Positions 12,047 through 53,460 of a DNA stretch of 55,068 nt are shown here, piece by piece. Within the stretch, counting starts at the first letter, position 1; each line of letters opens with the position of its first letter. Below the pieces are notes generated by a model, which had not been told where the DNA came from, searched no databases, and saw only the letters and a list, made by a program, of their open reading frames with translations. Origin of the DNA: Octopus bimaculoides (lineage: Eukaryota); assembly GCF_001194135.2 (NCBI RefSeq), contig NC_068982.1:103844976-103900043 (forward strand), in the 5' to 3' direction. Made by a program: the position numbers and the translations under genes.

Positions 12047-12053
12047 ATATACA

Positions 12054-14440: not shown

Positions 14441-14551
14441 TCATGCATCAGCAGCAGCTATTTCTGCAAAACTTGGGCAAGGAACATGTGGTACTTCATA
14501 ATGGATATTTGGTATTATATTGCCATCCTTATCACTTGTAATGTCTGTCGA
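14441..14551 (-). CDS. Terminal coding exon [36 protein letters not shown]
   Basis: Acceptor ttattatttacag, phase 0; only this frame is long. Confidence 0.6.
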   Translation of the reverse strand, partial: STDITSDKDGNIIPNIHYEVPHVPCPSFAEIAAADA

Positions 14552-17500: not shown

Positions 17501-20500
17501 CGTAGTAACTTCTCTTGAAAATGGACAAATTTTGGCATCATAGTGTTATCAAGTACTTGGACATTCATGCTGACATGGTTGCTATATTAGGGGAGGATGC
17601 TCCAGTTTTGTCAACAGTGGAAAAGTGAGCAGCTGAATTAAGAGAAACATCAGTCTTGAAGATGACTCAAGGTATGGACGTCCTACAACTGCCACCACCA
17701 AGGAAAACATTGACTGTGTTCACCACAAGGTGATGATGGATAACAGCATTTGACTATAAATCAAATAGTCAATATTATTAGCATATCTCATGAGAGAGTT
17801 GAGAATATTCTGCTTGGTGGGTGCCATGTTTTCTGATACCTGATCAAAAGCACATCAGGTTGATTACATCACAGGTGAAAATCTGACATTGTTTGAGGCA
17901 ACTCCAGCTGGTTTCCTTGAGTTATTCCTAACTCAGAATGAGGGTTGGCTTCATCACTTTGAGTCAGAGACAAAGAGACAATCCATGCAATAGAAATAAA
18001 CCTCCTCACCAACTCCAAAGAAGGCTAAAGTCATGGAAGGTGTTGGCCTCAGTTTTTTGGGGATGCAAAAGGCATTGTGTTTATTGATTATCTTCAAAAG
18101 GGCCACACTATCAATGGAGAGTACTATGGCAATTTTCTGAGGCAGTTACAATGGGCTATCAAGACCAAATGCCTAGGAGAGCTGATGAAAGGGTTTTGTT
18201 TCGTGAGGACAATGCTCCAGCACAAAAATCCTTGCTTTCAATGGCTGTTGTGCATGACTGTGGCTTTGAACTGGCTAACCACCTTCCCTATTTGGCCCCA
18301 TCTGACTATCATCTGTTCCCCAATATGAAAAAACACTTGGCCAAGAAGCAGTATCACAGTGATGATGTCATGTCTGTTATTGATGTCTTTTTTTATCAAC
18401 AAGATGAAAACTTCTTCACTAATGGGATCCAAATACTTCAACGCCAATGGAAGAAATGTGTGGACCACAAGAAAGACTATGTTGAAAAATAAACCTCATT
18501 TGGTCACATCCTATGAGAGTATTTTAGTCAGCCTGTGAACTTTCCAGCTGACCCTTGTACATTGCCCAAAATTCTGGAGATGTTTAACTGTGTTATAAAG
18601 TATTAAGTATGTATTGATACAATTTTTCAAGTAATTGGTAAATGAAATATTGAGACTTAACTGTTCCTTAAATATATAGATTCATTCTTAATTCATTTTG
18701 TGAAGAGAAGCATCACTATATATTAAACTGAAATTTCAAAACTACTTACACATAATTTGACTTGCATAGGCTGCTCTTTGGCAGGAAGATGGTTTGTTAT
18801 CTGGAATTTAAATAAAAAGAAAGAAGAAATCAATAAAGTGTGGCATTTTGTTTCGATAAATTGATTAATTTAATGCTTCCATAACTCAGTAAGAAATTCT
18901 TTGGACATTCTTTGTATATCATAAAAGAAGTAGTACCTCCCTTTTAACACATATGTCATTGGAGGATTTAAGTTCATAATGACAGGTTAAAATACACCTG
19001 AACACCACAGTACTTAATACTAGACACTAGAAATATAAAAAGTAAATGTCCTCAAAATCCATAAAAAAAGAAGTTGTTCATAAGACAAGAAATTAACTCT
19101 GACCACTTCAAAGTGGGTGAAAGATAAATATCTTCTTGGCTAGGACATTAGTTTATGACAGTATACTTTTTGAATATCCTTGGCAAAGATCACCTTGTTG
19201 CAAGAATCTGGACCATCACCCCAGTTACCACTTTCTGTCCTTGGTTTTTCCTACATACATAAACTTGCAGAGATGTTTAGCTTAGGTGGGCATCAACCAC
19301 TTCAATCTCACCTGCCTGAGAGCTTGTAATGGTCCAGGGCTCTGTTCCTAATCTTTTGACTAATGTATTAAGAATAATTAACATTTATAGAATAATAAGC
19401 TCAGGAAATGAAGCATATGAAGTAAAGTGTTCTTTCCTGATATGTCCTGAGATGTGAACTTATGATTTTTCTGTTTTCTTCTACCTTTCTTGTAATATAT
19501 CAAAAGAAAAAAAGAATTGTCGTTTCCCTAAATGCAAATGGATAACTAGATCTTTATAAGTATAAGTCAATCAATACTGCTGAATCTTAACACTTTATAG
19601 GCCAAAGGGAAGCACTAATAACATCAACATTTTGTTCTAAGTGTTTAGAAACTAAATACAGTGGAGAAGTTTCTAGATATTTTACCAGATTCGCAGAAGG
19701 ATTTAAGATCTGAACTCACTATAATAAGATAATGAAATATTTGTCAAATTTGCAATCCTTCTGGACTCAATAGCAATGAAGTGTACCTTAACAACATTCC
19801 TATTAGAGATAGATACATTGAACTGTTGAGAGTTACTTGCTTTTACCATGAACACAATAAGCATTGTGCAATTGATAATGGTATAAGCCATCAACTTGGT
19901 AAATACATTACTGTCCTGTTAAAGGAGCCAGTTACAACAATTAATGAAGAGAGTCAAAGGCTCTTACAAAATACAGAATCTGATATATTCAACACACAAA
20001 TTAACTACCACAGTTTACAATGTTACGGATGAAATAAAGAGAAAAACTTACTTTATATGTTATTCCTGCATGGTGCATCATGCATGACTGTCTTTGTAGA
20101 GTCTGGCGTGTGTACATTTCATTCCTAAGGGCATTGTAGCTATACATCAGAAGAAGAAAGAGAAGTTAGTTGAATTTATTTAACATCAACATATCAACCA
20201 ATACAAATTTAAAATAATATACCAATACATATTTTAAAATAAACAACTCCACCCAATGATCATTATATACAATGCCCTATAAATTCTAGATTCACAGCAT
20301 ACCTAGTGGTATCTATCTCCTCTCTAGCCATTGTTTACTTTTGGCTTCTCTGCAAGCTCTTCTGCCCTTTGACAGATTCTATTTTAAATTCTATTTGGCA
20401 CCCATATACCCTCCTCATGTAATAAATTGGGTAGAGGGTACCAATTTTGTCACCAACCACTTAGCTGTGAATCAGATTGTACTGGGTTACATGCCACAAA

Positions 20501-22527
20501 ATAATCTTTGGTTGGTGTATTGGTCATATATGGGTGGTGAATTCTCTGTCAATTTTAGCAATCAGCACTCATTTTCTCAACCAACTATATTTTTACTTGT
20601 GAAATTAATGTGTTAACAACTGAGTATTCCACAGCTATCTGTACCCTTAACACAATTCTTAGACTGATGCACTCAGCATGACATGATGTTGCAAGGTTCG
20701 ACCTCTGAAATACAGGCACAATTCAGAAAGAGAGAGAGAGAGAAAAGAATCAAATTCAGTTCTGGACTGACACTTTATCTAGTGACTACCAGAGAAGGAA
20801 AGACAAGGTTGATCTCAGTGGGATTTAAACTCAGAGTGAAGGAAGCTGAAGCCAGTATCTTAAGGCAGAGGCTGCTATATGCTACTTAAATTCATTTGGT
20901 GACAATCTTGGATTCTAGAAAGTAGTATATAGAATTCATATCTTTCTAAAGTATATTAGTAATTGTTAGTAAAGTTATTTCAACTAAGAATCAAAACTTG
21001 AGTGCATATTTCACACACCAAGGAATATATTGTAATCCCAAGATACCAATAACAGATAAGTACCAATTCATAATGGTCATACTGGAAATATAATTAAACT
21101 GAAACTTTTGAGCTTAAGAAAATAGTCTCAAGTATACCTATGTTGGAGAATTTGGATCTTTTTCTCATAGAAATTTGTTTTGCTATACCCCATATCCGGT
21201 ACATCAGTGAGTGTACTGAAAAAGAGTATTCAAAAAAGAAATTTTTTGTTATGAATTGTTTAAAATTTCATTACTTTATATTCAATAAAAAATATACTTA
21301 TTATCATTTTATATGAATTTTAACTTGAAACTTTGGTGGAAGAACATGTCCCACAAGACACACACCACAGTTTCAGATGCAATAGAACCTAATCTATCTG
21401 AAGAAACCAGATTGTTTTACTTTGCCATTGTGAACTACTTCTCCATATTGATAGTCTTCAGAAATTGTAAAAGGATGTTGGAATCTTTGTACTGAGACTT
21501 TTATAGAGATGAATAAAGTTGATTGTAAATAAGAATAAATGCAGTAATACCTCAAAAATGCAAACTCTCAGGTGTCATATGTATGTATGTATGTATGTAT
21601 GTATGTGTGGAGGCGCAATGGCCCAGTGGTTAGGGCAGCGGACTCGTGGTCATAGGATCGCAGTTTCGATTCCCAGACCGGGTGTTGTGAGTGTTTATTG
21701 AGCGAAAAACACCTAAAGCTCCACCATCCGGCAGGGGATGGTGGCTGACCCTGCTGTACTCTTTCACCACAACTTTCTCTCACTCATACTTCCTGTTTCT
21801 GTTGTACCTGTAATTCAAAGGGTCAGCCTTGTCACACTCTGTGTCACACTGAATATCCCTGAGAACTACGTTAAGGGTACATGTGTCTGTGGAGTGCTCA
21901 GCCACTTGCACGTTAATTTCATGAGCAGGCTGTTCCGTTGATCGGATCAACTGGAACCCTCGACGTCATAAGCGACGGAGTGCCAACAACAACAAATGTA
22001 TGTATGTATGTATGTATGTATGCATGTATGCATGCATGCACTGAAAGAACAGTTGGAAGTTGATCCAGATCTTTTTTCGAAGGTCATCACTGGTGACAAA
22101 AAGCTGGTGCTACGGAATTTGTAGATGTGAAAGAGGAGGAGAAAAAAAAACAATGGAGGCGTTAAAAGGCATCACCTTGCAAGAGTTCCAGGACTGCTTT
22201 CAAAAGTGGAAAATGCATCTGAATAGTGGAAAATTGCTTCAAATGGAGAAAACTTTGAAGGTGATAAAAGTGTGTAAACATGTAAAACTAAGTGAATAAA
22301 ATAATATTGCAAAATTGTGGTTTCTGTTGGGTACCCCCTTGTATGTATCGATGTATGTATATCTCTTTTACTTGTTTCAGTCATTTGACTGCGGCCATGC
22401 TGGAGCACCACCTTTAGTTGAGCAAATCGACCCCAGGACTTATTCTTTGTCAGCCTAGTACTTATTCTATTGGTCTCTTTTGTCGAACTGCTATCGGTTG
22501 TCAAGCAATGCTAGGGGACAAACACAG

Positions 22528-22566
<39 letters not shown>

Positions 22567-25500
22567 CATATATACGACGGGCTTCTTTCAGTTTCCGTCT
22601 ACCAAATCCACTCACAAGGCTTTGGTCGGCTCGAAGCTATAGCAGAAGACACTTGCCCAAGATGCCACGCAGTGGGACTGAACCCGGAACCATGTGGTTG
22701 GTAAGCAAGCTACTTACCACACAGCCATTATATATAAAAGTAGAATTTTATGCCATCCTGTTGATGAATCCATCTCTTTAAATCTTGCACTTCTAATAAT
22801 CCTTTACTACCCATTACATATAAACTCTTCATTATAAGGTCTGAGTGATTACAGAACTTTCTGTCCATGATTGTATCTTCAATGATACACTAACTGCTAA
22901 TTATTATATTAACCATACCAATGATCACAAACAACCACTCATATTCTCCTAAATTGACAGAACTTCACAATTAACAGTAATGTGAAAAATAAAGAAAACA
23001 ACTCTACTCTTTTATTTGTTTCAGTCATTTGACTGCGGCCATGCTGGAGCACTGCCTTTAGTCGAGTAAATCAACCCCAGGACTTATTCTAGTAAACCTA
23101 GTACTTATTCTATCGGTTTCTTTTGCCGAACCACTAAGTTACGGGGACCTTAACACACCAGCATCGGTTGTCAAGCGATGCTGGGGGGACAAACACAGAC
23201 ATACAAACATATATATATATATACATATATACGATGGGTTTCTTTTAGTTTCCGTCTACCAAATTCACTCACAAGGCTTTGGTTAGCTCGAGGCTATAGT
23301 AGAAGACACTTGCCCAAGGTGCCATGCAGTGGGACTGAACCCAGGACCATGTCATTGGTGAGCAAGCTACTTACCACACAGCTACTCCAAGAAAATTTAA
23401 ATAATTTTTCATGCTAATGAAGTTAAAGAATGAAACGTACCACTCCTTTATAATTTTATATTTTTTTCTTGGTTCAATCATGCGACTTTGTTCCAGGACT
23501 CTAATTTTCCGAAAAAGATCCTTGTTTTGTTCAATAAGCTAAAAATAAAATAAAGTTATTTACTTCGTAAAAATTACTTTTTAATTGCTGGGTCTGAGGG
23601 AAGAAGTGCTTATAGCTTTTGAAATGCCTTCAAGGGATTGGCACAGTTGACATCATTAACATTTTACATAAACTATCACAAGACAACACTTGCATGGAAA
23701 TATAGGGAGAAAGTTAGAGAGTGTCAATGTTCTGAGGATGAAGAATTGGGTTTTATGCATGGTGCAGGGATGTTAAACAAAATATGGTAGATTAGGGGAA
23801 GACGAGAAAAGTGAGCTAAGAGTGACTGAGACTAGCCTAGCCAGCTTGCAGGGAGCAGTGACCATTTATTGTTGTTTGTTGGCACTCTGTCGCTTACGAC
23901 TACGAGGCTTCCAGTTGATCCGATCAACGGAACAGCCTGCTCGTGAGATTAACATGCAAGTGGCTGAGCAGTCCACAGACACGTGTACCCTTAACGTAGT
24001 TCTCAGGGATATTCAGCGTGATACAGAGTGTGACAAGGCTGACCCTTTGAATTACAGGCACAACAGAAACAGGAAGTAAAAGTGAGAGAAAGTTGTGGTG
24101 GAAGAGTACAGCAGGGTTCGCCACCATCCCCTGCCGGAGCCTCATGGAGCTTTAGGTGTTTTCGCTCAATAAACACTCACAACGCCTGGTTTGGGAATCG
24201 AAACCGCGATCTTATGACCGCGAGTCCGCTGCCCTAACCACTGGGCCATTGCGCCTCCATGACCATTTATAGTAGCAGTAGAAAAGACAGAGAAAGGTGA
24301 CAACATGTATGTAGGCCAGTGGCTGGAGCATATCTTAGATGTGGATAGAATTATATTGAAAAGGAGATAAAACAGAAAGTTATTCAATGGGTTATTAACT
24401 TCATTTGGGTATGTTTTGTTTGAATTTATAGCAAAACACTATTTTGATTGGTTAAAATTCTCTGGCTAACTTCAATTTCTATCTCTTGTTACATATTAGT
24501 GAAATAGTGAAGAAATATCAAGAGAAGGAGAATAAAGAAATGGATAAATTGGGAACACAAAGGGATAAACACTGTTTATTAAAAGTATGCACAGAATGGT
24601 CTAAGGATTGAAAAGGGAGGTAGGGAGGGAGAGGGGGGAGAAGAGAGAGGCAAGGAGGAGAAGGGGAGAGAAAGAGAGAGTAGAGAGAGCGAGAGAGGGG
24701 AGAGAGAGAGAAAGAGAGGGAGATAGAGAAAGAGAGGGAGAGAGAGAGGGAGAGAGAGAAAGAGAAAGAGAGGGAGAGAGAGAAAGAGAAAGAGAGGGAG
24801 AGAGAAAGAGTGCAAGAAAGAAAGAGTGAGAGAGAGAAAGAAAGGGGATGTAGGAGGGGGAGGGAGAGGTATGTGGGAGGAGAGGGAGGGAGAGGTATGT
24901 GGGAGGAGAGGGAGGGAGATATGGGAAGAGGAGGTTACTTAGCCCGTCTGTAATGCTTTCATGTGATTAGTTGAAGGGAAAGGTGAAGAGCGAAAAAAAG
25001 GTGAGAGAAAAAGAGGGTAAGGCAAAGAGTGAGAGGGAAAGCGGGAGAGTGTTGTGTATTAGGTCTATAAAATTGTGCATAAAGTATATAAAGTGTATAT
25101 ATATATATAAAGTGCATTATGTAGTCATCATATTCCAATTTCCTTCACTTTTCAATGATTAGCAGATGAGTGACTATCTTTTGATACAGACAGAACACAG
25201 GCTATGCTATCAGGTTTTTTGGATTAAGTTTTCAGAAATAATCTTATATTTCGTATGTGTATTTGGTGTGCAAGATTCTTGATGTGGATACGTGTATTGA
25301 AAGAAATACAATTAAACCTTGGGAGAGGCATTATGCCGGTAATAAACACACGCACTGGTTCAGTCCTTTATTAATTTATAAACAGTATATAGTTTTTTGT
25401 TAAATCATTTCATTGCACTCTTGCAATCTATCAGCATAATGCCTCTCCCAAGGTTTAATTGAATAATCTTATAAGTTTACCATTAATTTTGTGAAATATT

Positions 25501-28500
25501 CATGGGTCGGTCCCACTAGTTATTATAAATATACTTATTTTTGGTATGTAAAAATGTGTAAACATCATAGAATGGTAGAAAACTCCCATTTTCATTTCTC
25601 AGTAGAAGCATTGCATTTATTTCCCTAACTTCCAAATCAGACAAGAACATATCTATTACAGGTACCAGGCCTGAAATTTTGGGGAAAGGAATAATCAATT
25701 GTATTGGTACCAATACTTGACCAGTACTCTGTTTTATTATCATTAAGAATTTGAAAGGCACAATTGACCTTAATGAGATTCAAACCTGAAACAAACAGCC
25801 AGAAGAAATACTGTAAGGCATTTTCTCCAACATTCTAAGAATTTTGTCATTCCATCTCTTGGCAAATTAAATAAACAATGATCTCAAATTTTGGCACAAA
25901 CTAGCAATTTTAGAGAGAGGGGTTTAGTCAATTACATAGACCCCTGTGCTGAACTGATACCTATTTTATCAACCCTGAAAGGACAAAAGGCAAAGACTAC
26001 CTTGGTGGAATTCAAAGTCAAAACGTAAAGAGCTAAAAGAAATGTTATTAACATTGTTGTTGGAAATTTCTGAATGAAATGCTACTAATATTTCTGATGT
26101 GTTAACATTTCTGACAGCTTGCTGCTCTGAATTAAATGAATAGTGATTTCATTATACACAAACCTAAATCCAAAGGCTTGGATGAATATCCCCTCAGTTC
26201 TGGAGCTGGCAGGATTATCCAAAAGTGATGGGAAGAGACCAGATGGGAAGAGACCAGATGGAAAGAAACCAGATTATCCCTGGATAATAGGGAGGTGCTT
26301 CATCTGGGACACCAAGGTCTGTGACTCTTTTGTTCCTTCCCTTATCCTGGATACTGTGGTAAATGGGAGGGTCACTGCTTCCATAGCCAAATGAAACAAA
26401 ACTCTGTAGTATTGGGACCTGGCAGTGAACTATCTCTTCGAGCCTGAGGCGTTTGAGAAATTCAGAAGGACTGGGCCATTAATGGTGAAGTTCTTGTCAT
26501 CGTTGGCAACTCCCCTCACTAAGGTGTCAGATGATGCCTGTGAGGGTGCTTAGCTTTTCCAATGCCTTAGCCTCACCATTGCTCATGGTAATGCTGTGAA
26601 CATGCTGGCTTGCTTCAGTAGGCTCCGTCAAACCTTGTGGTGTGTGACCATCTGAAACTCCTGGTGCTGCATTGATGTTTTTTCTTTCTTTTCTTTCGCC
26701 CCATTTTTTTGTCTTTCTTTTGTATCATATATGTATCATATACATGTGTGTTATATATGTAATAATACTTACATTATTACTTATTGTCAAACAGACATTA
26801 CAAACTAAAAAAAAAATTATAAAATAATATAATTATGTATAATATAATTGATACGGAATCCCCATCATGTTTATGAAAATATAATTGATACTGAATCCCC
26901 ACCAAGTTTAACCCTACATCTTCATTGAAATACCTTATCCATGTCATTTTGAAGTTTTAGGTTCTGCATTTGTAAAGCCATTTTTTCCTTGTTAAATTTC
27001 TCCATAAATTCAATTTTCTTTTGAAATGCCTGTAAACGAAATTTACTCTTTTATATTTCACTCTGAAAAATCATTTTTAAACATACTTCTTCAATTGGTT
27101 GTACATACTGATATGGGCTAAACGGTATACAAAATCAGAACTTTACTATCATTGTAACACATTATATAATACTACCTATGCCTGATACCTGATTTGTTTC
27201 CCACATTCCAAATCTTTTACTTTTTTTACATTCTCTACACTGTGTGTCTTCTAGTGTCAACTTATTGCTTTTTTCTATTGCAGCAGGTGTCATCCAACTA
27301 TAATACAGTTGAATAATTTCATTTGAAAACACTAGCTTAGCAACTTTACAGGGTTGGATCTTTTCAAATGTTGAATAGTAGTTATTTTGAAGAAAGAAAG
27401 GGATATATTCTGTTAATGTATCATATGCTTACAATGTGATCCCATACTAAATATATATCTTAATAAAACATATATATATCATCATCATCATCATCATCAT
27501 CATCGTTTAACGTCCGCTTTCCATGCTAGCATGGGCTGGACGATTTGACTGAGAACTGGTGAAACCGGATGGCAACACCAGGCTCCAATCTAATTTGGCA
27601 GAGTTTCTACAGCTGGATGCCCTTCCTAACGCCAACCACTCAGAGAGNNNNNNNNNNAATTTGGCAGAGTTTCTACAGCTGGATGCCCTTCCTAACGCCA
27701 ACCACTCAGAGAGTGTAGTGGGTGCTTTTACGTGACACCTGCACGAAGGCCAGTCAGGTGGTACTGGCAACGGCCACGCTCAAAATGGTGTCTTTTATGT
27801 GCCACCCGCACAAAAGCCAGTCCAAGGGCACTGGCAATGATCTCGCTTGAAAATCCTATGAAGGCCAGTCAGGTGGTACTAGCAACGGTCACGCTCAAAA
27901 TGGTGCATCTTATGTGCCACCTGCACAAGAGCCAGTCCAGGGGCACTGGCAACGATCTCACTTGGCTTGCCGGGTCTTCTCACGCACAGCACATTTCCAA
28001 AGGTCTCGGAAAAGTAGTCATCTCCTCGGTGAGGCCCAATGTTCGAAGGCCTTGCCTCACCACCTCAGCCCAGGTCTTCCTACCTCTTCTATGGGTTCCC
28101 TCAACTGTTAGGGTGTGGCACTTTTTCACGCAGCTATCCTCATCCATTCTCACCACATGTCCATACCAGCACAATCGTCTCTCTTGCACACTACAACTGA
28201 TGCTTCTTATGTTCAGCTTTTCTCTCAAGATACTTACACTCTGACGGGTATGCACACTGACATTACACANNNNNNNNNNNNNNNNNNNNNNNNNNNNNNN
28301 NNNNNNNNNNNNNNNNNNNNNNNNNNNNNNNNNNNNNNNNNNNNNNNNNNNNNNNNNNNNNNNNNNNNNNNNNNNNNNNNNNNNNNNNNNNNNNNNNNNN
28401 NNNNNNNNNNNNNNNNNNNNNNNNNNNNNNNNNNNNNNNNNNNNNNNNNNNNNNNNNNNNNNNNNNNNNNNNNNNNNNNNNNNNNNNNNNNNNNNNNNNN

Positions 28501-28862
28501 NNNNNNNNNNNNNNNNNNNNNNNNNNNNNNNNNNNNNNNNNNNNNNNNNNNNNNNNNNNNNNNNNNNNNNNNNNNNNNNNNNNNNNNNNNNNNNNNNNNN
28601 NNNNNNNNNNNNNNNNNNNNNNNNNNNNNNNNNNNNNNNNNNNNNNNNNNNNNNNNNNNNNNNNNNNNNNNNNNNNNNNNNNNNNNNNNNNNNNNNNNNN
28701 NNNNNNNNNNNNNNNNNNNNNNNNNNNNNNNNNNNNNNNNNNNNNNNNNNNNNNNNNNNNNNNNNNNNNNNNNNNNNNNNNNNNNNNNNNNNNNNNNNNN
28801 NNNNNNNNNNNNNNNNNNNNNNNNNNNNNNNNNNNNNNNNNNNNNNNNNNNNNNNNNNNNNN

Positions 28863-28893
<31 letters not shown>

Positions 28894-36197: not shown

Positions 36198-36230
<33 letters not shown>

Positions 36231-39200: not shown

Positions 39201-42200
39201 TCATACATACACACACACATGCACATATATAAAGATGTATGCATGTGTGTGTGTAAGTATGGAAGTATGTGTGTTTATGTGTGTGTCTATATGTTTGTAT
39301 GTGGAGGCGCAATGGATTTTACCACTTCTGAGGTTCCACTTGCCATGAAGCATATGTAGCCCAGATTTTTTCTACTCCATTCCATAAATCTTATATTCTT
39401 TTTTGCACACTCAACAACCCTCGTTGCCTACTGTGGNNNNNNNNNNNNNNNNNNNNNNNNNNNNNNNNNNNNNNNNNNNNNNNNNNNNNNNNNNNNNNNN
39501 NNNNNNNNNNNNNNNNNNNNNNNNNNNNNNNNNNNNNNNNNNNNNNNNNNNNNNNNNNNNNAATAAAACACTATTTGTATCCAGTGGTTAGGGCAGCGGA
39601 CTCGCAGTCATAGGATCGCGGTTTCGATTTCCAGACCGGGCCTTGTGAGTGTTTATTGAGCGAAAACACCTAAAGCTCCATGAGGCTCCGGCAGGGGATG
39701 GTGGCGAACCCTGCTGTACTCTTTCACCACAACTTTCTCTCACTCTTTCTTCCTGTTTCTGTTGTACCTGTAATTCAAAGGGTCAGCCTTGTCACACTGT
39801 GTCACGCTGAATATCCCTGAGAACTACGTTAAGGGTACACGTGTCTGTGGAGTGCTCAGCCACTTGCTCGTTAATTTCACGAGCAGGCTGTTCCGTTGAT
39901 CGGATCAACTGGAACCCTTGACGTCGTAAGCGACAGAGTGCCAACTATATGTTTGTGTGTATAATGAATGAAAATTGCATCCAAATGTGTTCATTAGCAG
40001 ATATACTCATCCCTGCACCACTTAAAGTTTAATAGGAATAAGAGCAAGTAATAAAGGAATAAATAATGTCTGGTCATTGAGCGACCAATGGTTCAGATCC
40101 ATGAAGACCACAGCTTCATGGACGACTCCTCAGACTCTTGTCTGGAGACAAATTTTACTCTTCATCTCTTGGAGGTGGAAAGTTATGATTATTGGTAAAA
40201 TGGTAATCAGAGAATAAAAGGTCTGGCGATATTCTCTGATGACCATTTGACCAATGACTGTAACAACTTTCCACCTCCAAGAGGTGAAGAGTAAAATTTG
40301 TGTTTGGACTAGAATCATCCACGAGGCTGCAGCCTTCATGAATGCGAAACCATTGATCACTCTATGATCAGACTTTAACTTCATTGCTTTAATACTTAAC
40401 TGCTCTATACTTTAGAGTGTGTTTCTTATTCAGTTATATGATACATTGACAAAATATATATATATATACATACGAACAGCCATGCTACATGGCAATGAAA
40501 TATGGGCTGTGACTGCTGCGGACATGTGTAACCTTGCAAGGAATGAAGCCAGTATGCTCCAATGGATGAGTAATGTCAGTGTGCATACTCGACAGAGTGT
40601 AAGTACCTTGAGAGAAAAGTTGAACCTAAGAAGCATCAGTTGTGGTGTGCAAGAGAGACAATTGCGCTGGTATGGTCACATGGCAAGAATGGATGAGGAT
40701 AGCTGTGTGAAAAAGTGCCACACCCTAGCGGTTGAGGGAACCTGTGGAAGGGGCAGACCCAGGAAGACCTGGGATGAGGTAGTGAAGCCTGACCTCCGAA
40801 CATTAGGCCTCACCAAAGCAATGACTTCTGACCGAGACCTTCGGAAATATGCTGTGCGTGAGAAGACCCGGCAAGCCAAGTGAGACCAAAATCCAAGGCC
40901 TCTGCCAGGGATGTAGCCAACCCACTTATTCTATATGTGATGGTGTATTAATGTATGGTCAGAGGGTGGTCATACCACAGACATTACAGAAGAGAATGCA
41001 TGCTAAGAGTCCCATGTGGTACACCCAGGCATCTCTAGAATGAAAGCGTTGATGTGAAGTTTTGTATACTAGTCAAGTATGGACAGGGAAGTTGAAAACC
41101 TGGTAAAAGGCTGCAGAATATGCATGCTGGTAGCGAAACTACCAACTACAAAATATGAGCCTTGGCTGGAAGTGGAAATACCATGGTCTCGATTGCATAT
41201 TGATTTTGCAGGCTGAATAAATGGATATTATTACTTTATAGTAGTGGACAGCTATGCAAAATGACCTGAGGTTGTGAGGTGTAAACGACCAACCTCATAT
41301 ACGGTAGTAAACTCTTTACATAAGCTGTTTGCAAGATTTGGTGCACCGGATATAATTGCCTCTGATAACAGAACACAGTTTGTATCCTGTGAGTTTAAAA
41401 GATTTTGCAAGATGTTAATGTTAGAACATAAAATTATAGCACTGTATCACCCAAGATTGAATGGAAAAGCTGATCGATTTATGGACACTTTTAAGAGAGC
41501 TTTGGATGAGGTCATAATCCAACAGTTCTTAAGGGTATACAGGGTAACTCCAAACCCAAATGCACCAGAAGGAAGTTCACCAGCAGAATTAATGTTTGCC
41601 AGAACGGTGAAGTTAGTATTTGATAAGCTTTTACCAGTGAAGAAAATAACATGTGCAAGTAAAGACATGCCAAAATTCTTTAGAATCGGAGTTAAGATAT
41701 ATGTAAAAATGTACAAAAATGGCAAGCAATACTGGGAAAAAGGAAAAATTGTAACATATGTAGGAAGAATGATGTATGGTGTAAGAAGAAGAACTGGAAT
41801 GGAAAAGAGACATAGAAATCAGCTTAAGGAAAGAGTCATACAAAAGGAACCAACAAGAGTAGAAATACTGATGGACTGGCTATATGACACTTTTCAGGTT
41901 CCGACACTGTTACAGGAAGTTGAAACCACACATACAAGGAAAAGGAAGAATAGTAAATTCCTAAAAGTAGACTTTAAAAAGAAAAGATATTGAGTATATA
42001 TAAAAAAAAGGAGGAGGGTGAATAAAGGAAATTGATTGTTAAATAAAATAATTAAAAGGTGAGACGTTGTATAGTGAAACTGTATACCCCTTCCCAATAA
42101 AAAGTGGTAGGAGTCACCCATTATAAATAGACCAGTAGCTGGTTTTCAAGAGAGGATCAAGAGTTGAAAGTCAACAGTTCTAGTCAGTGTCTTGTGGAGT

Positions 42201-45200
42201 TATCAGTGATAGTAAGACAGAAGAAGTTAGTGTATTACTATTCCGGTATAAAGAGATACAACAGTATCCGATGACTAGTAACTATTGTGGCTACTAGTAT
42301 AAAACAGCAACTACAATACAACGACAGTCACACATCTCACCTGTGGGAGGAACCCACTTTACAACAGTTTTTAAAAAATTTATTTGTATTAAATCTTAAC
42401 TACAAACTATGATACAAATAAATTAGCTATACATCCTCAACTATCCATTTTCTTACCTTATATATATATATATATGCACACATACACACATTCACAGACA
42501 CACTCATGCATACATGCACACACACACACGCATGCACACATGCACACACAATGCTTTCCAGTTAAGATAATTACCTCTTCGGCAGAAGTAGTGTGCTCTC
42601 TGGAACTTCTAGAACTTTTTTTCTATATAATAGAAAAAAATTCTGTTTGTATTAACATAAAAAGTATATATCATGAAAACAAATTATGCAACATAAAAGT
42701 TACTTAAAATCATTTACTTATGATGTCTTGACTTTGTTTAAATAAGGATGAGTGATATACATACAAATACAAACAGACACACACATATATACATCTACAA
42801 ATTTCAATGGGTTTTTGTACTGAAGTTGTGTGTTTACACAAATAATAAACCGGAGTATTCTTCTCAATGGGTAATTATTACTGTTCACAGCGGTGAACAT
42901 AGGAACAATGAATATAACTACACCAATATGAATAATGCCATGTTAGACAAGGTTGCTGAAAAAAAGCATTTCAATATAAATATACCATGATAACCAAAGG
43001 TACAGAATCAGGAGCAATTCAAATTACCAGAATGCAATTTCAGTTATTCAGGATAACCCATACAGGAATACAACCATTCAAGTCATGTTTCCTTAATGAA
43101 TGTTTTCTAAAAACATACGTGTACAGAGCTAAAATAACTTCCACATATGGTATCGAAAAGAATTACATAGGAATTATGGAGTACAAGTTTAAAACCAGGA
43201 GTACACAACATATTCACACTTTCACATTCCGATTTAAAAATGATTCCACTTTTTTCCTTTAATGCAACCTAAAACTGGATATTGTATATTGTTGAGATTA
43301 CAACTTAAGTCTGACCAAGAAATTAAACTGATGGAACCTCTCAAGCACTAGCTGTAGCTGCCTAAATAATATAGCCTCCACAACTCTCTCAATAATAAGT
43401 CTTAGAAATATCCCACTATCCCAATAAGCTGAATGCAGTTGTAGAAATGTAATAAACTGATATCTCAATGGAAAATGTCTACCAATGGTCTTAATATATG
43501 AATGATATCAAAATAGTAGATAGCATAGGAATGACATACACTGGACTAGCAATTAACCCTTTTAGAATCAGGTAAGCATGGCACACATATTCTTTTAAAT
43601 ACAGAGAGAGAATCGAGTCAACATCAATGTTACAATATATCTGGAAGGTCAAATTTGAAGACCACCAAATTAATAAAATATATTATTGTTAAAAAACTTA
43701 GGTTATGCTCAAATAGAAGTAAGAAAGCAACATTTTGTATGGTATAAAAACATTGTACATTAATAACTATAGATAACACATTAGCAAGAAAAGATATGAC
43801 ATTTTTACTATATATACTGATAATGACAATATCTTAAAAAAGAATTTGAAATAGAGCGTGAATAAGAGGGGTTATTTCCATCAAATTTTTTATGTAAATC
43901 TGAAACTTAAAACCCAAGATCCTGACATCAACTGTAAACTGCTACAGAAAGAGTGATATTGGTTGGCTCAGCTTGAGAAGGGAGGAAGGAGAAAAAGGCT
44001 TGAGATCAATGCAAGCAGCCTTTAAATGTCATATAGTATTTCTCACTTAGCACCAGCTAAACAACAGTAGCAAAAATAAATACATAAACTTAGTGCTAAA
44101 AAGTGAAGAGAGAAAAATCCTACATATCAGCAGTGAGCTCCTCTGAAAGTAATCTCTTTCTTATTTCTTTATTGCCCACAAGGGACTAAACATAGAGGGG
44201 ACAAACAAGGACAGACAAAGGGATCAAGTCGATTGCATCGACCCCAGTGCATTACTGGTACTTAATTTATCGACCCCGAAAGGATGAAAGGCAAAGTCAA
44301 CCTCAGTGGAATTTGAACTCAGAACGTAATGACAGATGAAATACTGCTAAGCATTTCGCCCGGAGTGCTAACGTTTCTGCCAGCTCGCCGCCTCTGAAAG
44401 TAATCTCTTTCTGATGGATACAAACCCAGAATAGCAAGGCTATCATACCTCAAAGAAGACCTGGATGTGAAATTCTCAACATACCAATAAAAGACTATGT
44501 TTTCCAAAGTATGTTTTCCAAAAAGAGTATGTTTTCCAAAAAGAGTATGTTTTCCAAAAAGAGTATGTTTTCCAAAGACTTGAAGAGCACATTAATATCG
44601 ACATGAAGTGTAGCCTCTCTTGGATTCATGACACTCCAAAGGCTATGCATTTGCAATCTAAGAATAGGAGTTTAATACAAAATACTTAGCAGACAAAAGA
44701 GACAGTGAAGCCCTTGAAACCCTAAAATGCGATTGAAAATGTAAATTATGTCATATTTCTGTGGAAGACATCACACAGAGGAGGCAGCAGCTCAAACATG
44801 TCTTCAACTTACTATCTCTATATGCAACATGACATCACTAAAACAATTTACAATGTCATTTGCAAAAAAGAGACTGACCTGAAATAAATATAGAGAATCA
44901 TCCTGTTATTGAATACATACACAAACATAAATATATGGAATAATGTTGGAACATTCATTGCTATTGAAAATCTGCCAAATGTAAACATAACCAGCCAGAT
45001 ATTGTTGTTTGGGAAAGAAAAGAAAAATGCATGTGATGTCATGAAAGTCAGATGCCCTACTGATGTAAACCTTCAAAAATCAAAAAGAAAGAGAATAACT
45101 TCAGACAACTAATTTGAAACCTCTAGCTTCTATATCCTGATTTTAAATTCACATTTACACCAATAATAATTGGTACACTTGCTTTTGTGAGTAAATGCAC

Positions 45201-48200
45201 ATGATACTCTGGATAAGTTATGGTTTTCAGATAAAGAAATCAACCAGTTAATTCACTCATTACAAATATAGTTGTGAGTGGAACAGTAAAAGTAGGCAAG
45301 AATTTCCTGGAGTTAAAAACGTAACATTGTTTTTGTTATCTACATTCCTACAATGAGGCTTTGTATCTTTGTTAGAAACCTGTTCCTTTCTCAGATGAAG
45401 ATTTCATATACTTAAAAACAGAACATACATACATTCATACATATATACATAAATACACACATATATGCATGCATATACACACATATACACATACATAAAC
45501 ACACAAAAATAGATGTACATACATTCATACATAGATACATGTATGTATGTATATAAAATCTCTCCTCCAAACAGGTGATTGTGTTTAATATAGTTACCAA
45601 GAAAGAAGTGACTGTGAGGTATTGGGAACGTTCTCGCTTTGGTCTCTATAAGAAAAAAAGAAACAAAATCCATCTCTGATTGTGTTAACATAATTAATAC
45701 ATTTCACAATTTCAAATGATACAGCATAAAAAGATTAATATAAAACTTCTAAAAACGTTTTGAGTTTGTTGAAATCAATCTTGATTGAATGCATGTTATC
45801 ATTTAGTGGTAAAATGCAAAACACTGTTTTATAACAAGGATTACTCTTAGCATTGCAATAAATATATTTTCACTCTACGTTTACAATGAGTACTTTTTCT
45901 TGTTACTAATTCATATATACATCGATTCCTATCGATTGTTTTTTTTATTTTATTATGCAGAGTTTGTGCGCATTTCGAGTCTGAAATGTTTTAATAAGCA
46001 TAAATAATTACAAATGAATATTTTAGGGGTAAGTTATTTTCTTCAAGTAGCTTCTCAGTTTTAACTACGCAACGGAACTAACTGAACCCTATTAATATTT
46101 ACATATTGTGATTTATATGCTTTATAACTTCTACAGCAAATAGTGCAATATGGTGAAGCTTCACAATAATAAAACTATACTCTAGGAACAAGATGAGTTT
46201 GTCATCTGATGACAGTTTGCCTCAAGGTGAGCATCAAAATTAGAGTTATGATGAGTTATCAATTACTGACTGGTGAGTACAGATATGAAAGGAAAAAAAC
46301 CAAGGAAAGTGATCCAAATGGAAGGAAGCTATGGAAAAGGTCTAATAACAAAAATGTGAAAAGGAATGGAGAAGGCAGATCTGAAGACACTGAATCATAC
46401 AAAGATAAACAACAGCCATGACAAATGAAAGTGGAAGTGCATTGCTTAGTGGTTAGGGTACTGGACTCATGATTGTATGATTGTGGCTTCGATTCCTGGA
46501 CTGGGATGCATTGTATTCTTAAGCAAAACACTTCATTTCCTTTTTCTCCAGTCCACTCAGCTGGCTAAAATGAGTAATCCTGTCACAGATGGGTGTAACA
46601 TCCAGGGAGGAATATATGCACCGGAGGGAGTGTGAAACTGGGCCTATACCCCTTTCACAATAATGTAAACTAACTGTGACAAACGGAAAGGTGAATACTG
46701 GAAAAAGTATATCCAATGCACATACACATAGAAAAAACTGATGCGAAAATGATGATAGTGATGATGATGATGATGATAATGATGATGACAGTCATGATGA
46801 TGATGATGTTGAAAATGATGATGATGTTTGGAAGTACTGAAGGTAGAAAAGGTAGCCAATATAGTGTTTATCTATTATTTTGATGCTAAAGACGGAAAAT
46901 GTCAACTGAACTGAAGCTTTAAACATTAAATAGAGCTACAGTAAAACAGTAGTTGATATTGTTAAGGCATATATAATGTTTACAGAGAACAGATTTAGAT
47001 TATGCAGATTCTGGATCACAATCAAATCAACTTCACTGTCACAGTACTTCTGGTGGCTCAACAGTTGGTAGAAATAAATGAGTAGAAATACTGAGGGATT
47101 GGCTATATGACACTTTTCAGGTTCCGACACTGTTACAAGAAGTTGAAACCACACATACAAGGAAAAGGAAGAATAGTAAATTCCTAAAAGTAGACTTTAA
47201 GAAGAAAAGATGTTGAGTATATAAAAAAAAAAAGGAGGAGGGTGAATAAAGGAAATTGATTGTTAAATAAAATAATTAAAAGGTGAGATGTTGTATAGTG
47301 AAATTGTATACCCCTTCCCAATAAAAAGTGGTAGGAGTCACCCATTATAAATAGACCAGTAGCTGGTTTTCAAGAGAGGATCAAGAGCTGAAGAGTTGAA
47401 AGTCGACAGTTCTAGTCAGTGTCTTGTAGAGTTATCAGTGATAGTAAGACAGAAGTTAGTATATTACTATTCCGGTATAAAGAGATACAACAGTATCCGA
47501 TGACTAGTAACTATTGTGGCTACTAGTATAAAACAGCAACTATAATACAACGACAGTCACACATCTCACCAGTGGGAGGAACACACTTTACAACAGTTTA
47601 AAAAAAATTTATTTGTATTTAAATCTTAACTACAAACTATGATACAAATAAATTAGCTATACATCCTCAACTCTCCATCTTATTACCTTATATATATANN
47701 NNNNNNNNNNNNNNNNNNNNNNNNNNNNNNNNNNNNNNNNNNNNNNNNNNNNNNNNNNNNNNNNNNNNNNNNNNNNNNNNNNNNNNNNNNNNNNNNNNNN
47801 NNNNNNNNNNNNNNNNNNNNNNNNNNNNNNNNNNNNNNNNNNNNNNNNNNNNNNNNNNNNNNNNNNNNNNNNNNNNNNNNNNNNNNNNNNNNNNNNNNNN
47901 NNNNNNNNNNTGTATTAACATAAAAAGTATATATCATGAAAACAAATTATGCAACATAAAAGTTACTTAAAAACATTTACTTATGATGTCTTGACTTTGT
48001 TTAAATAAGGATTAGTGATATACATACAAATACAAACAGACACACACATATATACATCTACAAATTTCAATGGGTTTTTGTACTGAAGTTGTGTGTTTAC
48101 ACAAATAATAAACCGGAGTATTCTTCTCAATAGGTAATTATTACTGTTCACAGTGGTGAACATAGCAACAATGAATATAAATCCACCAATATGAATAATG

Positions 48201-48948
48201 CCATGTTAGACAAGGTTGCTGAAAAAAAGCATTTCAATATAAATATACTACGATAACCAAAGGTACGGTACCAGGAGCAATTCAAATTACCAGAATGCAA
48301 TTCCAGTTATTCAGAAAAAATAGAAACAAAATCCATAATGTAAACTAACTGTGACAAATGACAATCAAATCAACTTCACTGTCACAGTACTTCTGGTGGC
48401 TCAACAGTTGGTAAATAAACATACAATAGAATATTGCTAGTAAAGATAGACCACAGGATTCAAATAGTAACATTTATATCAGAGAAAAATCCCCACAAAA
48501 TAATAACATAGAACAGAACTGAACTTGTTATGACAGCCACAGAAAAAAAGAGTTCCTCTTCAATGAATATGAAATATAATGTGATTTCAAGGTTATGGTG
48601 ATAAGTCTTTCCCTTGTAAAAATTTTGATATATTTTTATGAGAAATATGATAACCTTGTTAATATGTTAGATTTAGCAGTTTTATATCTATCACAATACA
48701 TGCATACATATAATACATATATACAAATATATATATGCATGTGTATTTGTGTGGATATTTGCTTCTTAAACCTAGATCAACATGTCCAAGGTAATTACCT
48801 TTACAAATTCTGTTGGCTCATCTTTGCGAGATTTAGGAGTTGGGCTCCTCTGCTGTAAAATTAAATATATAAAAACAGAAACATTATTGCATTAAATTAA
48901 TAAATTGCAGTACAAATCACTTCTAATTTGTTAAAAGAACTCATAAAT

Positions 48949-48998
<50 letters not shown>

Positions 48999-51427: not shown

Positions 51428-51461
<34 letters not shown>

Positions 51462-51615
51462 CATACATATATTACACTTATACAAATATATATACATGTG
51501 TACTTGAGAAGATGTTTGCTTCCTAATCCCAGGTCAACATGTCCAAAGTAATTACCATTTCAAATTCTGTTGGTTCATCTTTGCTAGGTCTAGGAGTTGG
51601 AGTTGGGCTCCTTTG
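14441..51615 (-). CDS. Unidentified multi-exon gene, about 430 aa in window: low-complexity repeat N-terminus, CxxC motifs, coiled-coil C-terminal half; 5' end probably beyond window
   Basis: Twenty GT-AG exons join in phase without stops: 51615-51556, 48852-48799, 45645-45598, 42622-42575, 38764-38708, 34974-34924, 34578-34524, 33769-33718, 32523-32460 (or to 32371 with a frameshift), 32254-32220, 31899-31818, 31285-31241, 30879-30838, 27446-27433, 27297-27189, 27029-26934, 21491-21439, 21215-21138, 20139-20052, 18800-18750. Terminal exon 14551-14441 (TGA). Manual model; no homolog recognised. Confidence 0.65.
15658..16044 (+). mobile_element. SINE family B with 12-bp TSD
   Basis: TSD actattggtgga at 15646-15657 and 16045-16056; (CAA)n tail. 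Confidence 0.9.
16664..17052 (-). mobile_element. SINE family B with 9-bp TSD
   Basis: TSD cttcctggg at 16655-16663 and 17053-17061. Confidence 0.9.
17359..18559 (+). mobile_element. Decayed full-length mariner (DD34D) transposon
   Basis: TIRs (g)gt(a/c)agctg(a/g)aaagttca(t/c)a(a/g)gctgacta; terminal TA. Broken transposase with [22 protein letters not shown] and [16 protein letters not shown]...[14 protein letters not shown]. Confidence 0.9.
18750..18800 (-). CDS. Exon [17 protein letters not shown] (phase 0-0)
   Basis: Long pyrimidine tract ending ttccag; donor gtaagt. Confidence 0.65.
20052..20139 (-). CDS. Exon (S)[29 protein letters not shown] (phase 2-0)
   Basis: Branch-like ctaac, pyrimidine tract, tag acceptor; donor gtaagt; single open frame. 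Confidence 0.75.
21138..21215 (-). CDS. Exon (N)[25 protein letters not shown] (phase 2-2)
   Basis: Acceptor ctctttttcag; donor AG|gtatac. Confidence 0.75.
21439..21491 (-). CDS. Exon [17 protein letters not shown] (phase 0-2)
   Basis: Acceptor gtctcag; donor gtagtt; bridges the phases of its neighbours exactly. Confidence 0.65.
21609..21994 (+). mobile_element. SINE family B
   Basis: Full head, body and tail; inserted in (TATG)n. Confidence 0.9.
22040..22343 (+). mobile_element. Internally deleted mariner remnant
   Basis: [25 protein letters not shown] followed directly by the C-terminal [18 protein letters not shown]; right TIR ...gggtacccccttgTA. Confidence 0.7.
22363..22727 (-). mobile_element. 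SINE family A
   Basis: High similarity to other family-A copies; small internal deletion. Confidence 0.9.
23004..23388 (-). mobile_element. SINE family A
   Basis: High similarity to other family-A copies. Confidence 0.9.
23870..24259 (-). mobile_element. SINE family B with 11-bp TSD
   Basis: TSD tgaccatttat at 23859-23869 and 24260-24270. Confidence 0.9.
24610..24935. repeat. Polypurine (GA/GGGA)-rich low-complexity tract
   Basis: About 320 bp almost exclusively G/A. Confidence 0.9.
26165..26615 (+). mobile_element. 3' remnant of a CRE-like non-LTR retrotransposon (restriction-like endonuclease domain)
   Basis: [20 protein letters not shown]...[18 protein letters not shown] ... YLFEPEAFE ... 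[10 protein letters not shown], with stops. Confidence 0.7.
26934..27029 (-). CDS. Exon [32 protein letters not shown] (phase 0-0, coiled-coil-like)
   Basis: Acceptor tttcgtttacag; donor AAG|gtattt; only one frame is open. Confidence 0.75.
27189..27297 (-). CDS. Exon (F)[36 protein letters not shown] (phase 2-0)
   Basis: Acceptor tattatag; donor CAG|gtatca. Confidence 0.6.
27433..27446 (-). CDS. 14-nt microexon YGIT(F) (phase 0-2)
   Basis: Acceptor tatatttag; donor gtaagc; needed to keep the frame. Confidence 0.5.
27479..28269 (-). mobile_element. RTE-clade LINE 3' end (RT C-terminus, 3' UTR, (GAT)n tail)
   Basis: [37 protein letters not shown], followed by a UTR homologous to 53700-54260. 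Confidence 0.85.
28900..29470 (+). mobile_element. CR1/L2-like LINE 3' remnant
   Basis: [12 protein letters not shown]...GRHC...[10 protein letters not shown]...[16 protein letters not shown]...RAALSNSL. Confidence 0.75.
29581..29652. repeat. 25-bp tandem repeat, about 2.8 copies
   Basis: Unit acagattttgtca(c/t)ttgggctcatc. Confidence 0.85.
30838..30879 (-). CDS. Exon [14 protein letters not shown] (phase 0-0)
   Basis: Acceptor cttttacttcag; donor CAG|gtatgg. Confidence 0.65.
31241..31285 (-). CDS. Exon [15 protein letters not shown] (phase 0-0)
   Basis: Acceptor cattttag; donor gtaatg. Confidence 0.55.
31818..31899 (-). CDS. Exon (C)[27 protein letters not shown] (phase 2-0)
   Basis: Strong tract tttctttcccttctctgtgatgaccag; donor AAG|gtaaaa. 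Confidence 0.65.
32220..32254 (-). CDS. Exon [11 protein letters not shown](C) (phase 0-2)
   Basis: Acceptor catcttttcag; donor gtaatt; single open frame. Confidence 0.6.
32371..32523 (-). CDS. Exon (I)[21 protein letters not shown]..., 3' boundary ambiguous
   Basis: Acceptor ttcttatttttcag. In-frame weak donor gtttct after 32460, or strong gtgagt after 32371 that needs a +1-nt correction. Confidence 0.55.
33718..33769 (-). CDS. Exon (I)[16 protein letters not shown](I) (phase 1-2)
   Basis: Acceptor ctaacaatattttcag; donor gtaggt. An alternative in-frame acceptor gives a first base at 33874. Confidence 0.6.
34524..34578 (-). CDS. Exon [18 protein letters not shown] (phase 0-1)
   Basis: Acceptor tattaatag; donor gtaacc; single open frame. 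Confidence 0.6.
34595..34862. repeat. Compound (TGAA)/(TATG)/(CATG) microsatellite filling an intron
   Basis: Direct inspection. Confidence 0.95.
34924..34974 (-). CDS. Repeat exon [17 protein letters not shown] (phase 0-0)
   Basis: Acceptor tttattttatag; donor ATG|gtaatt; paralogous to 38708-38764. Confidence 0.75.
36001..36410 (+). mobile_element. SINE family A inserted in the PLE endonuclease
   Basis: Complete copy; the PLE frame resumes after it. Confidence 0.9.
37158..37390 (-). mobile_element. RTE 3' UTR fragment with (GAT) tail
   Basis: Homologous to 27479-27790 and 54020-54260. Confidence 0.85.
37563..37651 (+). ncRNA. Degenerate type I hammerhead ribozyme motif in the PLE 3' region
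   Basis: Stem I cttggc/gcccag (5 of 6 pairs), CTGAAGA (37569-75), long stem II, GAAG (37634-37; consensus GAAA), palindromic CATATG, TA cleavage site (37644-45). Confidence 0.5.
38152..38222 (+). pseudogene. Degenerate tRNA-like sequence / SINE head
   Basis: A-box-like TAGTGTAATGG, D stem, perfect T stem gcggg/cccgc with a 7-nt loop; anticodon loop and acceptor stem decayed. Confidence 0.4.
38708..38764 (-). CDS. Repeat exon [19 protein letters not shown] (phase 0-0)
   Basis: Acceptor tttgtttcatag; donor ATG|gtaatt; shares gagttcctctcagacac with 34924-34974. Confidence 0.75.
38989..39205. mobile_element. Mariner-type MITE, about 215 bp
   Basis: TIRs gtgctgaaaagttcctggctttaag / cttaaagccagtaacttttcagtac; ends in TA. 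Confidence 0.7.
39303..39944 (+). mobile_element. SINE family B interrupted in its A-box by a PLE-derived segment and an N gap
   Basis: ggaggcgcaatgg at 39303-39315; resumes ccagtggttagg at 39581. Confidence 0.8.
40066..40375. mobile_element. Foldback/MITE: about 310-bp near-complete palindrome flanked by TA
   Basis: Arms pair over nearly the whole length (37-bp block with 1 mismatch, 26-bp block with 2 mismatches); 13-nt central loop. Confidence 0.75.
40465..40925 (+). mobile_element. RTE-clade LINE 3' fragment
   Basis: AMLHGNEIW...[10 protein letters not shown]...[14 protein letters not shown]...DRDL. Confidence 0.85.
40927..42366 (+). mobile_element. Gypsy LTR retrotransposon 3' part: decayed integrase, PPT and 3' LTR
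   Basis: HPGISRMK...CRIC (HHCC), [29 protein letters not shown], with stops. PPT aaaaggtgaga; LTR 42065-42366 bounded by (T/C)GTTGTA...TACAACA. Confidence 0.9.
42575..42622 (-). CDS. Repeat-type exon [16 protein letters not shown] (phase 0-0)
   Basis: Acceptor tttttttctattatatag; donor GAG|gtaatt. Confidence 0.65.
43080..43700 (+). mobile_element. Two tandem decayed Penelope-like GIY-YIG fragments
   Basis: [33 protein letters not shown] (43080-43260) and LNGKCL...TYTGLA..FRIR*AWH..SFK...[12 protein letters not shown] (43440-43700). Confidence 0.65.
44162..44394 (-). mobile_element. tRNA-derived SINE family D with long TSD
   Basis: TSD tgaaagtaatctctttct (18 bp; up to 22 bp counting cctc) at 44140-44161 and 44391-44412. 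Degraded relatives near 5060, 5230, 9700, 15420, 16080, 25660 and 25900. Confidence 0.85.
44496..44577. repeat. 18-bp minisatellite, about 5 units
   Basis: Unit tatgttttccaaaaagag. Confidence 0.9.
45598..45645 (-). CDS. Repeat-type exon [16 protein letters not shown] (phase 0-0)
   Basis: Acceptor tttcttttttcttatag; donor TTG|gtaact. All frames are open; frame chosen by chain phase. Confidence 0.55.
46169..46891 (+). repeat. Local duplication B, copy 1 (copy 2 at 49051-49753)
   Basis: Collinear, highly similar blocks. Confidence 0.9.
47102..48313 (+). repeat. Local duplication A, copy of 41877-43053 (Gypsy tail, LTR 47289-47595, exon position hidden in N gap)
   Basis: Shared sequence extends on both sides of the LTR, so this is a segmental copy rather than a second insertion. 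Confidence 0.9.
48799..48852 (-). CDS. Repeat exon [18 protein letters not shown] (phase 0-0)
   Basis: Acceptor tttaattttacag; donor AAG|gtaatt; paralog of 51556-51615. Confidence 0.75.
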
Positions 51616-53037: not shown

Positions 53038-53262
53038 CTTACTCTTTTACTCTTTTATTTGTTTCAGTCATTTGACTGCGGCCATGTTGGAGCACCGCCT
53101 TTAGTCGAGCAAATCAACCCCGGGACTTATTCTTTGTAAGCCTAGTACTTATTCGATCGGTCTCTTTTGCCGAACCGCTAAGTGACGGAGACATAAACAC
53201 ACCAGCATCGGTTGTCAAGCAATGCTAGGGGAACAAACACACACACACACAAACACACACAC

Positions 53263-53301
<39 letters not shown>

Positions 53302-53460
53302 TACGACGGGCTTCTTTCAGTTTCTGCCTACCAAATCTACTCACAAGGCTTTGGTCGGCCCGAGGCTATAGTAGAAGACACTTGCCCAAGGTTTCACGGA
53401 GTGGGACTGAACCCGGAACCATGTGATTGATAAGCAAGCTACTTACCACACAGCCACTCA
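53038..53460 (-). mobile_element. SINE family A, complete
   Basis: Close to family consensus. Confidence 0.9.

Follow-up and report, generated by a model that had tools for sequence, protein, structure and literature searches.

The window analysed here is a 55,068-nucleotide (nt) stretch of the Octopus bimaculoides genome (NC_068982.1, positions 103,844,976 to 103,900,043, forward strand), with 36% G+C and seven runs of N. Between positions 14441 and 51615, its minus strand carries what is probably (probability about 0.75) the 3' part of a gene already annotated in this species, namely, the last 13 (8-20) of its 20 coding exons. The product is XP_052834497.1, a protein of 405 amino acids (aa) that is identical to UniProt A0A0L8IHZ1; RefSeq names it "serine/arginine repetitive matrix protein 1 isoform X1" and UniProt "Uncharacterized protein". 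The protein was identified in an exhaustive HMMER search for which the terminal exon alone (14444-14551, minus) was the query; the final 36 residues of XP_052834497.1 match this exon at 100% identity. Residues 111-405 (295 consecutive) map exactly and in order onto 13 exons of the window, comprising 888 nt including the stop codon. Over the whole gene, residues 2-405 map exactly onto 19 exons, all of whose boundaries are AG/GT, and exon 1 ends with the ATG as its final 3 nt. Seven exons that lie up to 29 kb past the right end of the window encode residues 1-110. The 20 coding exons extend across 69.6 kb of chromosome CM046602.1 (GCA_001194135.2; coding sequence approximately 103,859,416-103,929,049), whose sequence equals that of the window at 50,628 of 50,628 overlapping bases. 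No neighbouring gene is called within 10 kb.

Exon map and recorded gene models

A first-pass annotation, made from the letters of the window, had proposed a hidden minus-strand gene of about 20 exons at 14441-51615. The span and strand are borne out by the record, since exon 8 starts, at its acceptor, with base 51615 and the stop codon ends at 14441. The gene is indeed invisible to a list of open reading frames (ORFs), because all of its exons are small, with 10-37 codons each in the window. The exon number is right for the gene as a whole, with 20 coding exons, but only 13 of these lie in 14441-51615, and the gene begins about 29 kb past the window. The claim of novelty fails: the UniProt model has been public since the 2015 genome, and the gene is also in the current RefSeq annotation with three isoforms. 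As a discovery, the locus therefore carries little weight, the gene model being public already.

The coding exons in the window are the following.

Exon 8, 51556..51615, minus strand: 60 nt, phase 0-0, residues 111-130 exact; fourth copy of a 20-aa repeat
Exon 9, 48799..48852, minus strand: 54 nt, phase 0-0; fifth, degenerate repeat copy
Exon 10, 42575..42622, minus strand: 48 nt; exact protein mapping
Exon 11, 38708..38764, minus strand: 57 nt; exact protein mapping
Exon 12, 34924..34974, minus strand: 51 nt; flanks homologous to other mini-exon flanks
Exon 13, 31560..31589, minus strand: 30 nt; strongest acceptor at the locus
Exon 14, 30838..30903, minus strand: 66 nt; exact protein mapping
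Exon 15, 26934..27029, minus strand: 96 nt; coiled coil begins, within the predicted helix 225-268
Exon 16, 23441..23538, minus strand: 98 nt (32 codons plus 2 nt); coiled coil continues; absent from the first-pass chain
Exon 17, 21138..21215, minus strand: 78 nt; split-codon C, 25 codons, plus 2 nt
Exon 18, 20052..20139, minus strand: 88 nt; split-codon S, 29 codons
Exon 19, 18750..18800, minus strand: 51 nt; exact protein mapping
Exon 20, 14441..14551, minus strand: 108 nt (36 codons) plus TGA at 14443-14441; matches the final 36 residues of the protein at 100% identity

The twelve junctions within the window run from 51556 to 48852, 48799 to 42622, 42575 to 38764, 38708 to 34974, 34924 to 31589, 31560 to 30903, 30838 to 27029, 26934 to 23538, 23441 to 21215, 21138 to 20139, 20052 to 18800 and 18750 to 14551. 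All acceptors of the gene (19/19) rank in the top 10% of AG sites on the minus strand, with the median at the top 3.8%, and among the donors 15 of 19 rank in the top 7.3% of GT sites. Exon 16 has its acceptor in the top 1.1% of AG sites and its donor in the top 1.4% of GT sites. Exon 8, which sits in a repeated DNA unit, is bounded by the acceptor ttttacag and the donor gtaatt.

Four protein models have been recorded for the locus: X1 (405 aa), X2 and X3 (385 aa each), and the older XP_014790746.1 (571 aa). Each of the short isoforms lacks one 60-nt unit, E5 in X3 and E6 in X2. A literature search on the accessions of the gene gave no match, and neither did an exact look-up of 10 ORFs of the window. 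In a word-indexed protein search, no match was returned either for 141 aa of joined exons (86 residues identical to XP_052834497.1) or for 4989 aa of minus-strand open stretches that hold most of the 295 mapped residues. The proteomes of O. bimaculoides and O. sinensis, including proteins from the same chromosome, are present in that index, as shown by a control search. These nulls are false negatives and no evidence of the absence of the gene, because the queries contained long stretches identical to XP_052834497.1.

Mini-exon array and assembly gaps

The N-terminal half of the protein is composed of modules of 14-22 residues, each of which has its own symmetrical phase-0 mini-exon of 30-66 nt. 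In each module, a basic S/T/P-rich half is combined with an acidic half whose last residues are T-[DE]-[FM]-like. All 13 mini-exons (E2-E14) are in phase 0 and are multiples of 3 nt in length, as is the length of exon 15, and the flanks align over E2-E12, with one repeat per phase-0 exon. E5-E9 are five copies of a single 20-residue module. Among E5-E8, the DNA identity is 90-100%; exon 9 is paralogous to exon 8 minus 6 nt in frame. Each of the five copies lies in a unit of approximately 300 aligned bases with (TA)n upstream and (ATGT)n downstream. The mini-exons have in common T-rich acceptors and a downstream intron of the GTAATTAYTTTGGACATRTTGA type, and the older members E2-E4 and E12 still carry a T-rich acceptor and a downstream intron of the GTAATTAYTTTGGAYATRTTGA type. 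To judge from these features, the array arose through successive tandem duplications of a unit comprising an exon and its flanks. As all units are in phase 0 and have lengths divisible by 3, the gain, loss or skipping of a unit leaves the frame intact. The gene is a tidy example of a protein enlarged by duplication of phase-0 mini-exons.

The titin PEVK region is built in a similar manner: its short P/K/E/T/S-rich modules have one symmetrical phase-0 exon each, have multiplied through tandem duplication and can be left out without loss of frame. The likeness concerns the exon-per-repeat architecture only. The octopus protein has no sequence similarity to titin, no Ig/Fn3 context and no known muscle role, and at 405 aa it is far smaller.

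Four assembly gaps fall within 14441-51615, all of them intronic, with 600 nt or more to the closest annotated exon.

27648..27657: 10 N, exon 14-15 intron, 56 identical bases on each side
28270..28862: 593 N, exon 14-15 intron, flanked by a reverse transcriptase-like repeat and (TA)n
39437..39561: 125 N, exon 10-11 intron, flanked by a repeat resembling a short interspersed nuclear element (SINE)
47699..47910: 212 N, exon 9-10 intron, at the expected exon site of a duplicated exon-10 unit

The reading frame is independent of the length of these gaps, because every gap is intronic and the frame is set by splicing. The gap at 27648-27657 is an unmerged contig overlap, and about 66 nt in 27592-27713 are an assembly artefact inside a SINE-like repeat. 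The gap at 47699-47910 bears on the array itself. A 1.2-kb unit around exon 10 (41857-43051) is duplicated at 47080-48314 with 95-97% identity; 41857-42468 aligns with 47080-47698 and 42648-43051 with 47911-48314, and the missing segment, 42469-42647, holds exon 10. Because the sole missing piece of the duplicate, exon included, coincides with the gap, the gap may hide a second copy of the 48-nt phase-0 exon 10. The locus as a whole contains 16.8 kb of N, much of it between E7 and E8, whose 12.8-kb intron includes three large gaps of 805, 3228 and 1560 N (positions 30539-39006 of locus record L002). More 60-nt repeat exons are probably unassembled, and the true repeat number is probably above the annotated one. 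The length of the deposited protein is thus probably a lower bound, the repeat array being incompletely assembled. A partial repeat unit is also seen at 54382-55067, where it runs to the edge of the window.

Protein features and alternative explanations

A Pfam scan of XP_052834497.1 (E<=1) yielded only a sub-threshold match to AIPR_N, at 12.8 bits against a cut-off of 28, and a PDB sequence search with the protein gave no match. Hence, these searches agree with the first-pass statement that no family could be assigned. The protein names given by NCBI to the isoforms, namely, SRRM1, HDGF-related protein 2 (HDGFRP2), UNC-89 and cell surface glycoprotein 1, share a low-complexity S/T/P/K/R/E-rich composition with the octopus protein, and the domains that define the name-giving families (PWI; PWWP; Ig/Fn3/DH-PH/kinase; SLH) are lacking. 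The PWI domain of SRRM1 was not found by the scan, and the sequence has no long RS/SR tracts, being SP/TP/K/E-rich with few RS dipeptides (QRSPTP, SRSS). Similarly, neither the PWWP and integrase-binding domains of HDGF-related protein 2 nor the Ig/Fn3 arrays, DH-PH and kinase of UNC-89/obscurin were found by Pfam, and the protein has just 385-405 aa. The names do not show orthology, because the four contradict each other; they reflect low-complexity composition.

In an AlphaFold2 (AF2) model, residues 1-207 are disordered. Helices are predicted at 225-268 and 270-282, with local confidence values (pLDDT) of 80-89, and the segment 225-282 is unbroken over the exon 15/16 junction; a weaker helix follows at 309-353, and a short beta-hairpin lies in the terminal exon. 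Thus, the prediction for the C-terminal half, encoded by exons 15-20 in unique DNA, is a long helix of approximately 60 residues, a second helix and a short beta-hairpin tail. By eye, L/M/L/N/L/I/L occupy the a/d positions of a coiled coil over the exon 15/16 junction. The S/T/P/K/R-rich repeat N-terminus, the coiled-coil region and the C-terminus described in the first-pass annotation are all present in the recorded protein. Our best guess is that the protein would act as a dimerising coiled-coil scaffold or adaptor bearing a long disordered arm, and that this arm, rich in SP/TP sites, would probably be phosphorylated.

Four points speak for a coding gene: two annotation sources have the same product, three isoforms are recorded, the splice sites are strong throughout, and in unique DNA the predicted helix continues over an exon junction. 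Several observations weigh against it. Conservation of the repeat exons does not exceed that of their intron flanks, and the differences between these exons are mostly non-synonymous (pairwise 0-5 non-synonymous vs 0-1 synonymous), so the repeat part shows no sign of purifying selection. This is expected for a young disordered array under gene conversion, and a non-coding repeat would look alike. The G+C content of the annotated exons (38%) is near the background. The AF2 model is a single-sequence prediction of low overall confidence, with a predicted template modelling score (pTM) of 0.23. No homologue outside O. bimaculoides was seen, in searches that did not include the full-length protein. 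The recorded isoforms are presumably backed by RNA-seq, to judge from how the NCBI pipeline works.

The alternative that survives best is that the locus is transcribed or predicted without being genuinely coding, the model being an annotation product of a tandem array and fortuitously open small exons, such as a long non-coding RNA given an ORF. The lack of any homologue, domain or structure match, the flank-like evolution of the repeat exons with their mostly non-synonymous changes, the ease with which stop-free GT-AG chains of such a size arise by chance, and the conflicting isoform names, which are typical of low-complexity matches, all fit this explanation. It is unlikely, however, in view of the identical 405-aa product reached by two annotation efforts, the three isoforms, the strength of 19 of 19 acceptors, the frame-preserving lengths throughout (E2-E14 and exon 15) and the high-confidence predicted helix that spans an exon junction in unique DNA.

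It is also rather doubtful that the locus is an octopod-restricted and still-expanding array. The modules would then outnumber those annotated, with copies lying in gaps (47699-47910 and probably the 16.8 kb of N), and their number may vary between individuals; alternatively, some of the exons found only in the first-pass chain would be real alternatives.

Very improbable is the explanation that the first-pass model itself, with 21 exons and 431 aa, is the true or an alternative transcript, encoding an isoform with CxxC motifs. This model was reported as 1293 nt, whereas the annotation has 13 exons and 888 nt in the same span, so that at least 405 nt of the chain are in no recorded model. The elements peculiar to it are as follows.

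CREC exon, 27189..27297, minus strand: in 0 of 4 models; acceptor only in the top 20% of AG sites
YKDSN exon, 21439..21491, minus strand: in 0 of 4 models; stands where exon 16 belongs in the chain
Exon with the 32460 donor, 32460..32523, minus strand: donor GTTTCT; in 0 of 4 models
CSTC motif, 34540..34551, minus strand: adjoins a (CATT)n microsatellite; in 0 of 4 models

The peptides quoted in that model do all occur on the minus strand: LQNDMDK at 26954-26934, a 17-residue peptide with YKDSN at 21491-21441, DVPDMGYSK...ILQH at 21205-21140, SYNALRNEM at 20141-20115, CREC at 27239-27228, CSTC at 34551-34540, and the 21-residue C-terminal peptide at 14506-14444, followed by the TGA stop at 14443-14441. 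The quoted junctions are bounded by AG/GT, the extra exons are open and AG/GT-bounded, and the YKDSN exon is phase-compatible with its neighbours. However, the extra exons are in none of the four recorded models. The junction DMDK/YKDSN...ME/NTLTD does not occur there either; the models instead read DMDK/LIEQNKDLF...IIKE/CTLTD via the exon 23538-23441. The extra exons have the weakest splice sites of the set, with the CREC and YKDSN acceptors in the top 20% and top 40%, respectively, against the top 10% or better for annotated exons; the donor of the YKDSN exon is in the top 22%, and 7 nt upstream of its acceptor there is a further AG. Chance always supplies exons of this kind, and a chain search added SINE and reverse transcriptase pieces that were equally "good". 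Roughly one-third of the first-pass chain, together with both CxxC motifs, is best regarded as added by chance. Accordingly, a zinc-binding CxxC...CxxC protein was rejected, as both motifs lie outside all four recorded models and the recorded protein has no CxxC. A candidate six-exon core (27297-27189, 27029-26934, 21491-21439, 21215-21138, 20139-20052 and 14551-14441) contained four annotated exons, and the CREC and YKDSN exons were dropped from it as unannotated.

The argument of the first-pass annotation from a stop-free chain of GT-AG exons in phase was examined against controls in the same 37 kb, with the rules left unchanged (GT-AG, in phase and stop-free; exon lengths of 30-150 nt). The longest chains reached up to 245 exons on the minus strand, 244 on the plus strand, 251 in the reversed sequence and 254-258 in Markov shuffles, and the control chains were still comparable when splice-score thresholds were imposed. 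A crude dynamic-programming search that combined splice and codon scores also took SINE and reverse transcriptase fragments into its chain. Neither a composition-based coding score, nor purine/T-content contrasts between exons and flanks, nor off-frame stop counts distinguished the annotated exons from chance. The chain property is thus not above chance, and a stop-free GT-AG chain is no evidence by itself; the reality of the gene rests on the outside record. That there is no gene at all, the chain being a chance product of AT-rich sequence and the database entry unrelated, is barely credible: the controls equal the chain in length and the coding score does not pick out the exons, but 295 consecutive residues of a deposited protein are matched exactly, in order and ending at the first-pass coordinates, and the locus record equals the window base for base, which refutes this explanation as far as annotation goes.

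The locus is of more use as a calibration case than as a discovery. A reader without tools recovered the span, the strand and the general architecture of a gene built exclusively from exons of 10-37 codons; the same reader padded the chain with chance exons, and the most specific claim, the two CxxC motifs, was built on them.

Mobile elements and other open stretches

Outside the exons, a protein-like open stretch of 95 codons (KKGKQLNDDPLKLILAQNNWKELASKFISDVASNIDMNKVMKMVKSFNVSSFLKDFQKKEL) is located at 8714-8998 on the plus strand in unique DNA, 5.4 kb past the stop codon of the gene; it had no match in Pfam or in a composite protein search. Two SINE-like families are dispersed through the window. 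The first, of approximately 390 bp, has six copies in both orientations with 80-94% identity (8243-8571, 15658-16045, 16665-17052, 21607-21995, 23869-24260 and 39581-39945), and the second, of approximately 400 bp, is found at 11654-12051, 22359-22736, 22983-23388, 36006-36431 and 53047-53459. Scans of the window for Rfam families and tRNAs gave no matches, including to these two repeat families. Three plus-strand stretches, 18088-18489, 8045-8227 and 22045-22296, may be remnants of mariner/Tc1 transposases, which they resemble; Pfam (E<=0.01) gave no match for the two that were scanned, 18088-18489 and 22045-22296.

Two further stretches lie in introns of the gene. At 41265-41990 (plus strand), a 242-codon open stretch resembles the C-terminal part of an integrase core (rve), at 30.2 bits, just below the Pfam cut-off of 32.6, and O. 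bimaculoides has many "K02A2.6-like" proteins with which it shares 56-74% identity. By this similarity, the stretch, located within the exon 10-11 intron and running opposite to the gene, is a retroelement remnant. In the exon 11-12 intron, a Cys-rich ORF at 35577-36098 (plus strand), which we take to be like the GIY-YIG region of Penelope-like elements, gave no Pfam match and shows 34% identity (pairwise E = 4e-9) to residues 17-75 of XP_014790746.1. This older model seems to have fused a mobile-element piece that was dropped from the current one.

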